From NCBI RefSeq assembly GCF_964188315.1, contig NC_135666.1, forward strand, positions 29,701,424-29,762,000: a stretch of DNA of 60,577 bases. The letters run 5' to 3'. The translations under genes and the position numbers were made by a program. Positions 40,619-47,819 of the stretch are shown piece by piece (the first letter of the stretch is position 1; each line of letters starts with the position of its first letter). This DNA comes from Podarcis muralis (lineage: Eukaryota). The notes beneath the pieces are model-generated. The model was not told the DNA's origin, made no database searches, and was given only the letters and a program-made list of their open reading frames with translations.

Positions 40619-40807
40619 CTTCCCTAGTAATATTCAATAGTAAATTATCCTGGATGAGTAACTGAAATTCAGTGCTTGCCCTTAGGCGAAATGTACAAAA
40701 GGTGATGATAGAGCTGACGATCAAAGGGAAGCGTGTACAAAATTAGAGCGAGTTAAGCCACAGTTAAATGTGGTTGGTGCGTTCTGGCTTTCCCAGCAGA
40801 TTTATAC
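40619..40807 (-). ncRNA. Candidate internal exon of DLX6 antisense lncRNA (Evf2/DLX6-AS1-like) in DLX6 intron 2
   Basis: On -: pyrimidine tract TTTTCCTTCTTACCTCGTGTGTCATTCAG|G acceptor (40808/40807) and GGGAAG|GTGCGC donor (40619/40618), bounding 189 nt of complex sequence. Inferred from splice signals only. Confidence 0.35.
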
Positions 40808-41231
40808 CTGAATGACACACGAGGTAAGAAGGAAAACGATTAATTTGAATTCATGAATGCAGAAAGGAAGAATAATAATAAAAAGAAACCTTTTTTGTGG
40901 CAGTTTGTAATCTTCCGGACAGCAAAAAACAAAAACAACAGGGATAAACCATGTTCATTGGATCCGCTGGTGGTTGCCAGGAATGTAGGCAAAGAGGGGC
41001 ATCTGGGATTTGGTGCCTTATTGTGATATAGGGGCGACCTTGAAGGCAAAAGAAGACAGGAGGTGTCTTTAAAGAGCAGCATATCACCACCACACATATT
41101 TAATGGCAATCCGAGCACCTAAAGTGTGGTACAGAGACAGGACACTGTCACCTTCCCAGCTGGGATGTTTGCAAAAAGCTCTTATTTGAATGACACCTAG
41201 CTCTCTTACATTGCTGCAGAAGGCTGGTTGT

Positions 41232-41262
<31 letters not shown>

Positions 41263-43627: not shown

Positions 43628-44894
43628 AGCCACAAAATGTCAAAAGAGTCCTGCGTTACTCTACAGCTTTGGAAAGGTTATTTTCCCGCGCCTTCCCAGG
43701 AACCACCCATGTTTTAAATCCTAAATGCAGTCATGTGAAATTTATTACTCGGCGGAACTGTCCTCCTCAGTAACCGTGCTTAGGATGGCAGCCTCGTATA
43801 GTTCACATACAGAGTACCACAGGGCTGCTGTAGAACAGACGTGCTCTGCATGGCCAGCTTGCCTAAGATTTATACAGACAGAATATAATATAGTAATGGT
43901 CAGAGATGTATGCCCATGTAGTTATCTATGCCATAGATGTATCACGTCAGTAGCTAGATAGATGCTTATGACATAAGACACGCGCGTGCACCAGTCCTAA
44001 CATCGCATCTGTTTTGCGACCTACCTATCTGCCCGGCTAACCAGTAAAAATTATTTTGTGCAAAGGAGACTTGCTTTGGATCTGCAAGCCAATTTGCACC
44101 CTCTGAAACCAACAGCATCAAAGTGGCTTGCTCTTAATCGACTTGGGTCCCCCCCGGATTCTCTGCTTCGCAGAGAAAATTCGTAGATTTCCAGAATCCC
44201 GCGGAATTTTCTTTTCCGTTTTCAACCCTGGCGGCGCGAAAGCTGCCCTCGAACTGCCTTTTGGAAGATTTGGCAAAAAGTCGAGAGGTTGCCTGCTTTT
44301 GTAGGTGGCAGAGGGTGATGGTCTCTCACCCCCCCCGCAACCCCACCAGCTCTCTCACACACTCCTCCGCCAAACAGACTAGCTAACGCTGCGTAATAAT
44401 GTTCCCCAGGTCTCTCTCTCTCTCTCTCTCAGCGCTCCCTGGTCCCCATTGCCGAGTCCAGGACGAATCATATCCTTCTTAGGGTGGTGCAAAGGCGAGA
44501 AATCATGCACCACGAAAAGCCCCTTTCGTCACACAAGCAGGATGCCCCATACTGCGAGAATTAATGGCTAGAGCCCTGGGCATCCTTCAAATTATGAACC
44601 TTGAAACCACTGAGCCATTTATCAGAAGTCAATGGAGATCCTCAGAGTGCTCCGTATAATGACAGCTACATACAGTCGTGCAAAAGGACAGTCACTATAA
44701 TTAGACACAAAAGCCAAGACTACTTACCAATATACCAGCGCCGGTTTTTTGTTGAGCAACTTCCACGCTCAGTCAGTCTTCAGAATGGCTTAAAACCGAT
44801 CAAGTCTTGTCATTTTCTACCATTCGCATTGTTACATTAGGAGGAAAAAATGTTTTCTTTTCTTCCCCCCCCTCCTCGTTCCCACTGTGAAACT

Positions 44895-45259
44895 TTGGGT
44901 TCAGCTCTCCCCAGGATCAATTGTGAACAAAGCCCCCAGCTGCAGTGCCATCCAATTTGAGGCAGACATTGGGGACAATTTAAGGTTTTTATCCATAAGN
45001 NNNNNNNNNNNNNNNNNNNNNNNNNNNNNNNNNNNNNNNNNNNNNNNNNNNNNNNNNNNNNNNNNNNNNNNNNNNNNNNNNNNNNNNNNNNNNNNNNNNN
45101 NNNNNNNNNNNNNNNNNNNNNNNNNNNNNNNNNNNNNNNNNNNNNNNNNNNNNNNNNNNNNNNNNNNNNNNNNNNNNNNNNNNNNNNNNNNNNNNNNNNN
45201 NNNNNNNNNNNNNNNNNNNNNNNNNNNNNNNNNNNNNNNNNNNNNNNNNNNNNNNNNNN
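44895..45259. promoter_or_regulatory. Intergenic enhancer I56i (ei), 5' edge visible, core inside N-run
   Basis: CCCCCAGCTGCAGTGCCATCCAATTTGAGGCAGACATTGGGGACAATTTAAGGTTTTTATCC (~44933-44994) matches my recollection of the start of mammalian I56i. The position ~1.3 kb past the DLX6 3' end fits. The next 260 nt are N. Confidence 0.8.
45000..45259. other. N-run, 260 nt
   Basis: Seen directly. Confidence 1.
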
Positions 45260-47819
45260 ATGGAAGAGGCTTCTGAGGTACAGCTGGTTGTGGGGTTCAC
45301 TGAATTATTCAGATTCGTGTTAGGGAGAGAGAAAGCTATCATACATTTAAACCGAGGGGTAGCCCCTTCCCTTTGTAGGAAGAGGCCCCAAGTCTTTCTG
45401 ATGAAGGATAATCCTCCCCAAACCAATGGAACCACAGGAAAAATGGGGATGCTGCGAGCGAAGCCACAAAGCCCGTCAGATAGGATGCAGATCCCAGTTC
45501 TCAGCAACGCTTCCTGGGAAGTGAGTACCATTGAGCTGAATGCGGCCTTCAGTGCCAAGGGAGTAAATATGTTCAGGATCAGGGCAGAGTTAGAGGATGG
45601 CAGGGCTCAGGCTGATGAAATCAGGGACAGAGCTGTCGTGATTTTGAGGATCTTGGACGGCAGATTGAAATCCGCTGAATTTCTAGTATGTTGGCTTAAC
45701 TGGAGGGGCTTGTTTTATTTATCCGGCCTTACTCATCGCCTCTACCCCTGCACAACACACATGCATCTCTCAAACTCCCCCCCCCCATACACACGAGCAG
45801 TGCATCCAGGATGACATGTTAACCTTTCACGGGTTAGTTCCTCCCATTTCACTAGATCTCGAGGGCTTGGTCCACTTTTAGTCTACCATCAAAATCCGGT
45901 TCTTGGTGGGAGTTGATGAGAAGGGTCCTCATCTGTCTGGTCTTCCCCCTCCCCATTCTTCTGTCTGTTGTGTAGCAGCGCAATCCTCTAGCGGGCTCTA
46001 CTCAGAAGTCAGTTCCATCGCTTTCAAATGGGACTCACTTTCAGGATTGGGACAATCGGTTCTCTCCGACTTCCTCTGAGCAATGTATAAGGAATCGCGC
46101 TCGCCCTGTCTGTGTTAAGAGCCGGAAGGACGATTTGCTCGTTTTTCAATGGACGTTTAGATAAAGCAGGGATCGTGGAAGATGCTTGCAGGAAGGGCCT
46201 CGGTGGCGGCGAGCTGGGGAGCCAGAAAGGTTTACCTGTCTGCTGTTGAGGGTGAGGGACGCTGACGCCGAGGCGCTCGAGAAACAGCGTCATCTATAGA
46301 TAAGAGTGGGACAATTGTGCCAGAATTGAGCAGGCTTCTCAAAAAGGGGTTCCTTTCAGGGCTTCACCAGAAAACTCTTTGCAGCTAAACAGAGGACACC
46401 CCCAGACCCGTAAAGTCCCTTAAATTAATCACATATCTAATAGTACTGATCCCACTTCCAGATAAACAGGAAGGGGTACCTGGGGAGGTAATACGGGGCG
46501 CGCGCAATGGCTTGTGCGTGTGGATAATCCCTCTTCCATTGAAATCCAAGCCAAAAGGCCCGCGTAGATCCGGATTGTTCCTGAGGAAGCGGAGCCTCAA
46601 AAGCAATAAACAACCCACGCAGAACTGGAGTGTTTGTTTGTGTTGTGTAAATGTTCTGAAGTAGAACAGGGAAAGAAACTGGCGGAACTCAGCCAGGCCA
46701 AATTTATAACCCCTTTAAACCGAGAAGAGGTTCTCCAGTCTGTTCAAGCAACATGGATTTTAACCCCCTCACTCCCCCTCCCCCGCAACACACATCCGAT
46801 TCCCAGCTCCATTAGAATGAACGGGTTGCTTTGCGAGATGAGACCGTGAAAAGGCTCGTGAAAGGGCCAAAGTAGAAGCAGGGCGGTGCGCCATTGAAAT
46901 ACATGGGATTTCTTTCCCAGTTTGGTGTGTCTCGCATAAAGTAGGAGCGGGAAGTAGAATCGGTATTTCGGCAGCCTGATTGCTGGGCTGGGTGTCTAGC
47001 TGAGCTGTATTCGACATACCCCTCTTAAAAACAAAAGGGAAAAAACCACACACTTGCTTTTAAGAACATTTACCTAGGGGAAATCCCGAAGGGGGTTTCA
47101 CAACCCTATTCTTTACTTCTCTACTCCGAAACGTCCCACGAATGGGATTTACTTGTAAGTAAGCGTGCAGTATCCTTTCAGACTTAGGGAAGACGAAGCA
47201 CACACACACGTACACCAGCTAACACAGTGGATCAGACCACTTTCAAGCAATGGGACGACTCTGCATTAAACATGGAAACCCAGATTTCGAAGGGAAAACA
47301 CCGTGGAGTATTTCTTTGTCATTCTCAACCGGGAGTTCCCAAATGGCACTTCACTGATGTTGACAACATAGCGAGTCCAACCCCCCCCCCCCGCCTCGCA
47401 ACACACATTCACCGGTTCGTTTTCGAGACAACACCCCCTTTCCATATACACCCCCCCTTATTCTGAACCTCTACGTGAGTCACTGAAAATGTGGGAATCC
47501 TGAGCCGCCCACCCAAGCCGCAGAGCGCCCCCCCAATAAAAGCTACAATAAAAGCAGGCAAACAAACAAACAAGTAAATAAATAAATGTGCGTCCGTGTA
47601 ACTCGCTTATCGAAAGGTCTAAGTAAGGAAAATCGAGAAATTAGAATGATCAGGGTTTCCTTTTTCTTTTCTTTTTCTTTCTTTCTTTTTTGCAATAATA
47701 AAAATAATAATAATAATAAAAGTAACCATCATTAAAACGTGAAGAGGTACAGCTGATGGGATATGCGGCAGCAGTCGAGGAGGTTTAAAACCGAACAAAA
47801 CAAAAAACTTACCCCCGTG

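Follow-up and report, generated by a model that had tools for sequence, protein, structure and literature searches.

The question raised by this locus is whether a lizard carries, next to DLX6, an antisense long noncoding RNA (lncRNA) of the Evf2/DLX6-AS1 type, and whether such an RNA would be spliced at two places proposed for it in a first-pass annotation of the sequence: a minus-strand donor at 44728/44727 and a short exon inside DLX6 intron 2. From these signals it was argued that the lizard keeps the same exon logic as mammals, which would make the Evf2 architecture pan-amniote. An amniote-wide antisense lncRNA at DLX6 is already in print and the pan-amniote idea is not new, since DLX6-AS1 has been classed in the "300 Mya" age group, i.e., as having a chicken homolog, in the supplementary table of a 2024 paper (PMC11221658), which also singles it out to exemplify old lncRNAs. 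Human DLX6-AS1 and its reported chicken homolog are like the RNA considered here in being an antisense lncRNA at DLX6 that is taken to predate the mammal-sauropsid split, but their age class rests on chicken position and sequence, and it comes with no reptile exon map. If a lizard Evf2 homolog exists and uses the 44728 donor, it would give a squamate data point for an lncRNA to which an age of about 300 million years is already assigned, and it would help in asking whether splice signals share the constraint that acts on the ultraconserved element I56i.

The DLX6/DLX5 pair and its intergenic element

The window, that is, the whole stretch of 60,577 nt that was analysed, carries DLX6 on the plus strand and DLX5 on the minus strand, so that the two genes are convergent, tail to tail. 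When DLX6 exon 1 was translated, the best protein matches were snake DLX-6 sequences (85% and 78% identity), with further matches to DLX-6 of gecko, turtle, bird, and mammal. The two genes were delimited as follows.

37466-42590, plus strand: DLX6, with exons 37466-38051, 39985-40178, and 42339-42590 (343 codons plus the stop codon)
59744-55289, minus strand: DLX5, with approximate exons 59744-59384, 57480-57296, and 55615-55289

The window also contains four runs of N, at 35382-35577, 37140-37276, 45000-45259, and 47862-48247, with lengths of 196, 137, 260, and 386 nt. These uneven lengths, and the fact that homology to mouse I56i begins about 25 nt from the edge at 45000, suggest runs in which very conserved DNA was masked on purpose rather than plain assembly gaps. 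The third of them is located between the two genes.

45000-45259, no strand: N block, probably the masked core of I56i; on its DLX6-ward side, mouse I56i homology begins at a distance of about 25 nt

The donor, the exon, and the junction proposed between them are all located on the DLX6 side of this block and cross no N; they are therefore independent of it. In mouse, Dlx5 and Dlx6 are likewise convergent with I56i (ei) between them, and the features that define a locus of the Evf2/DLX6-AS1 type, a convergent DLX5/DLX6 pair with a conserved intergenic I56i, are present in the window. We read it as the lizard DLX6/DLX5 pair with an I56i-type conserved element in between. A paralogous arrangement is known for Dlx1as (Dlx1os), an lncRNA overlapping I12b, the enhancer between the convergent Dlx1/2 genes, although it belongs to another locus, outside the window.

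Homology to the start of mouse Evf2

The extent of the conserved DNA next to the N block was examined with four mouse genomic primers used for I56i screening (PMC8520905), which were matched to the window. They matched at 44955-44974, 44944-44963, 44569-44588, and 44540-44559, with 1-2 mismatches each. The last two of the three mouse I56i-deletion primers that were tried had no match in the window, nor did the one mouse I56ii primer that was searched.

at least 44540-44974, no strand: mouse-lizard conserved block, consisting of the DLX6-ward part of I56i and its flank; it brackets the candidate donor

To this block we could add information about the RNA, using 20 antisense 20-mer ChIRP probes against mouse Dlx6os1/Evf2, which are numbered 5' to 3' along the RNA (PMC12297475). 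They were compared with the whole window, allowing up to 3 mismatches. The first probe matched the plus strand at 44943-44962 with 1 mismatch, the second at 44885-44904 with 2 mismatches, and the third at 44770-44789 with 1 mismatch; the three matches stand in the 5'-to-3' order of the RNA, the chance expectation being about 0.01 per probe. Considering that the probes are antisense to Evf2 and match the plus strand, the lizard minus strand is the Evf2-sense strand, and it runs toward DLX6.

44770-44962, minus strand: counterpart of the 5' exonic part of mouse Evf2 (Dlx6os1), defined by probes 1-3

As judged by these alignments, the minus-strand sequence that immediately precedes the GTAAGT has its homolog in the beginning of the exonic part of mouse Evf2. 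At the DNA level, then, the lizard has a 5' exon sequence that belongs to the ultraconserved element and whose sense strand is antisense to DLX6, and the ordered matches between 44962 and 44770 are the closest likeness of this locus to that of mouse. In mouse, deletion of I56i leaves Evf2 nearly undetectable, and the authors of that work considered that the promoter was presumably removed (PMC8520905).

Beyond this region the likeness to mouse ends. Probes 4-20 had no match anywhere in the window at up to 3 mismatches, and in a relaxed search the best sites for probes 4-6 had 7-8 mismatches out of 20, which is the chance level. By the same probes, no downstream exon similar to mouse Evf2 exons 2-4 was recognized in the whole window. 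The primers used for genotyping the mouse Evf2 exon-1 insertion had no match in the window either. A weak conservation is to be expected of the Evf2 RNA, and therefore the unmatched probes leave room for a lizard homolog. Covariance models of Rfam gave no relevant match with E-values up to 1 in the two segments searched (1-43562 and 43604-60577).

The candidate donor and the RNA that may use it

The letters of the donor were found as claimed in the first-pass annotation: on the minus strand, the TTG has its last base at 44728, and 44727-44722 is occupied by the GTAAGT.

44722-44730, minus strand: candidate 5' splice site TTG/GTAAGT, with last exon base 44728 and a matrix score of 8.89

Splice sites were scored with an approximate vertebrate splice-site matrix; the scores have only relative value. 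For calibration, the true donors of DLX5 and DLX6 scored 8.74-11.36, a range in which the 44727 donor falls. Taken by itself, the motif carries little information about its own use: the minus strand of the window contains 10 copies of GTAAGT and the plus strand 11, the figures for the longer GGTAAGT are 5 and 2, respectively, and 21 minus-strand donors in the window score at least as high as that at 44727. About 10% of shuffled sequences had a donor of 8.89 or more no further than 275 nt from the N block, a figure to be read knowing that the look was targeted; the position of the donor is only mildly unusual, and this place was searched on purpose in the first-pass annotation.

Its relation to the homologous stretch speaks in its favour. 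The GTAAGT starts 42 nt DLX6-ward of the third probe site, and between the N block and 44728 no minus-strand donor reaches a score of 6; those that follow in the DLX6 direction are at 44330 (7.72), 44025 (8.42), and 43480 (10.11). The first minus-strand AATAAA/ATTAAA after the N block is located at 43746. Taking into account that it is the first strong donor after the Evf2 5' homology and that no poly(A) hexamer comes earlier, the site is a reasonable candidate for the donor of exon 1. Of the Evf2 architecture that had been claimed for the lizard, the strand and the location of the donor are thus supported, while the shared exon logic, which involves the inner exon, is not.

The explanation that we prefer is the following. 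Read on the minus strand, the DNA between about 44974 and 44540 is the lizard copy of the DLX6-ward part of I56i and its flank, the first 200 nt or so of which correspond to the stretch where, in mouse, the enhancer lncRNA Evf2 (Dlx6os1) starts. Transcription in the lizard probably passes through this block toward DLX6 and gives an RNA of the Evf2/DLX6-AS1 type, and for such an RNA the GTAAGT at 44727 would be the first consensus U1 site, reached before any poly(A) hexamer. In the 189-nt stretch of DLX6 intron 2, a weak acceptor and a middling donor would most likely have come together by chance. Taken together, the homologous block, the antisense RNA, the candidate donor, and the chance inner exon make up an explanation that we hold to be somewhat probable. 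Within it, the use of the 44728 donor by the candidate lizard RNA is proposed only tentatively, judging from its letters and its place.

A stronger proposal would be that an Evf2 common to all amniotes uses this GTAAGT, placed inside the ultraconserved I56i block, as its conserved exon-1 donor, in which case part of the extreme conservation of I56i would be due to an RNA-processing signal besides the enhancer function. We consider this improbable. The hexamer is inside a conserved enhancer block, and therefore its conservation could come from the enhancer alone. In addition, mouse Evf2 exon 1 may extend past the position homologous to the lizard GTAAGT, since probe 4 and the exon-1 genotyping primers fail to match.

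The alternative that survives best is that the lizard makes no spliced antisense RNA here, the block giving rise to at most a short unspliced enhancer RNA and the GTAAGT being part of the enhancer flank or a chance hexamer. We regard this as a serious possibility, although short of an even chance. It agrees with the motif frequencies, which are at chance, with the location of the donor within DNA conserved between mouse and lizard, with the lack of a match to any Rfam lncRNA family, and with the fact that none of the listed holders of the stretch is recorded as RNA. The run search gave 24 runs, five of which are raw RNA runs of the same species. However, an absence of RNA among the listed holders does not imply that the locus is silent, the mouse RNA begins in the homologous sequence, and a chicken homolog of DLX6-AS1 has been reported (PMC11221658).

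It is also conceivable, if rather unlikely, that the 44728 donor is real and is joined to an acceptor other than 40807. The partners would be a short exon located in the 2.1 kb that separate the donor from the DLX6 stop codon, the strong minus-strand acceptors at 39081 and 36716, or sites further upstream of DLX6. Such a junction would fit the plan of the mouse gene. The Kohtz laboratory described four Evf exons, of which exon 3 contains the start of Evf1 and exon 4 is shared by Evf1 and Evf2; according to one review, transcription of Evf1 begins upstream of Dlx6, and its two exons are separated by about 37.5 kb. According to another review, which cites Feng et al. 2006, the whole Dlx6 gene is within Evf2 intron 2 in mouse, so that the first two Evf2 exons are on the enhancer side and the last two upstream of Dlx6. 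It is also in favour of another acceptor that those at 39081 (11.16) and 36716 (9.72) outscore the 5.73 of the acceptor at 40807. Against it, probes 4-20 are unmatched, so that homology gives no position for any later exon.

Returning to the preferred explanation, its usable outcome is a site for an exon-1 RT-PCR primer, on the minus strand at 44962-44728; the gene structure itself keeps the status of a candidate.

The candidate exon inside DLX6 intron 2

The letters of the proposed exon are also as claimed. On the minus strand the CAG ends at 40808, the first exon base is 40807, and GTGCGC comes directly after the AAG, whose last base is 40619; the exon measures 189 nt and is non-repetitive within the window.

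40619-40807, minus strand: candidate exon in DLX6 intron 2, with scores of 5.73 for the acceptor and 7.86 for the donor; most likely a pseudo-exon due to chance

By comparison, the true acceptors of DLX5 and DLX6 scored 9.47, 11.44, and 12.53, plus a weak one of 5.06, and the two sites of the candidate exon rank below nearly all true DLX5/DLX6 sites. Stronger minus-strand acceptors are located nearby, at 41038, 40557, 40325, and 39081. We then counted the minus-strand acceptor-donor pairs 50-300 nt apart that were at least as good as the candidate: there were 58 in the window, and only one in DLX6 intron 2, which is the candidate itself. Dinucleotide-preserving shuffles of that intron gave a mean of 1.8 equally good pairs, with at least one in 60% of the shuffles. 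The exon has no statistical weight, its splice signals being no commoner than expected by chance. In the comparison with Evf2, no mouse probe matched the candidate exon.

The plan of the mouse gene leads to the same result. If the whole of mouse Dlx6 is within Evf2 intron 2, as stated in that review, an exon inside DLX6 intron 2 is not part of the mouse plan, and the claim of the same exon logic is not supported, because the mouse gene as described there has no counterpart for it. It is only the model of the first-pass annotation that departs from the arrangement with DLX6 wholly inside one intron, and this is a difference between that model and mouse Evf2. The stretch 40807-40619 was consequently rejected as an Evf2 exon on the grounds of its chance-level pairing, its weak acceptor, the lack of a probe match, and the contrary mouse plan. 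That this exon is used at all appears very unlikely, and the use of the exact junction from 44728 to 40807 still more so.

The complete model, in which the 44728 donor of lizard Evf2 is joined to 40807, the stretch 40807-40619 is retained as an exon, and further exons follow upstream of DLX6, can accordingly be dismissed as highly improbable: its three sites do exist as letters, its donor is rightly placed and stranded relative to the mouse Evf2 5' homology, and its exon is non-repetitive, but that exon is at chance level and unmatched by any Evf2 probe, its weak acceptor has better ones adjoining, and mouse Dlx6, on the review's account, is contained wholly within one Evf2 intron.

Against this dismissal, exons located within DLX6 might be present in certain isoforms of human DLX6-AS1. 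As for the composition of the intron, most of DLX6 intron 2 is non-repetitive, just as the 189-nt stretch is.

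DLX6 and nearby acceptor-like sites on the opposite strand

The acceptor-like sites of the minus strand were scored near DLX6 with an approximate vertebrate splice-site matrix, whose values are only relative, and the two highest scores corresponded to the following positions:

39081, minus strand, acceptor-like site within DLX6 intron 1 (score 11.16)
36716, minus strand, acceptor-like site upstream of DLX6, some 750 nt from its start codon (score 9.72)

Exon 1 of DLX6 (37466-38051) has a very high GC content (0.77) and encodes long runs of Gln, Pro, His, Ala, and Gly, with a resulting protein of approximately 343 residues. 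In the protein search the best matches were the DLX-6 proteins of snakes, with 334-336 residues, whereas those of gecko, turtle, and birds comprise approximately 267-281 residues.

The DLX6 3' end and the N runs

By hexamer scan, neither AATAAA nor ATTAAA was found on the plus strand in 42591-46000, the 3.4 kb that follow the DLX6 stop codon; therefore, the poly(A) signal of DLX6 is either a variant or located farther out. The 3' UTR may extend toward the conserved block of I56i, the DLX5/DLX6 intergenic enhancer. Four N runs of unequal length were detected in the window:

35382-35577, N run of 196 nt
37140-37276, N run of 137 nt
45000-45259, N run of 260 nt, adjoining the mouse I56i homology
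47862-48247, N run of 386 nt, where I56ii might be expected

These runs look like ultraconserved stretches masked on purpose, rather than ordinary gaps.

Sequencing runs, repeats, and a hairpin

Between 17 and 27% of the words of 40400-44999 were contained in each of 14 small sequencing runs (X1-X14; 65-162 million letters) with four organism labels. These runs resemble conserved-element capture libraries more than they do RNA. The window also contains an interspersed repeat, about 370 nt long, in three copies, 86-92% alike and one of them inverted:

3366-3738, repeat copy
14079-14440, repeat copy
31443-31817, repeat copy

Another pair is formed by 1-256 and 7753-8008. The segment 527-610 is an almost perfect palindromic hairpin, matched on both strands by Rfam mir-5408; the score, 37 bits, is far under the gathering score of 90 bits. 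The hairpin is probably a small inverted-repeat element rather than a microRNA.
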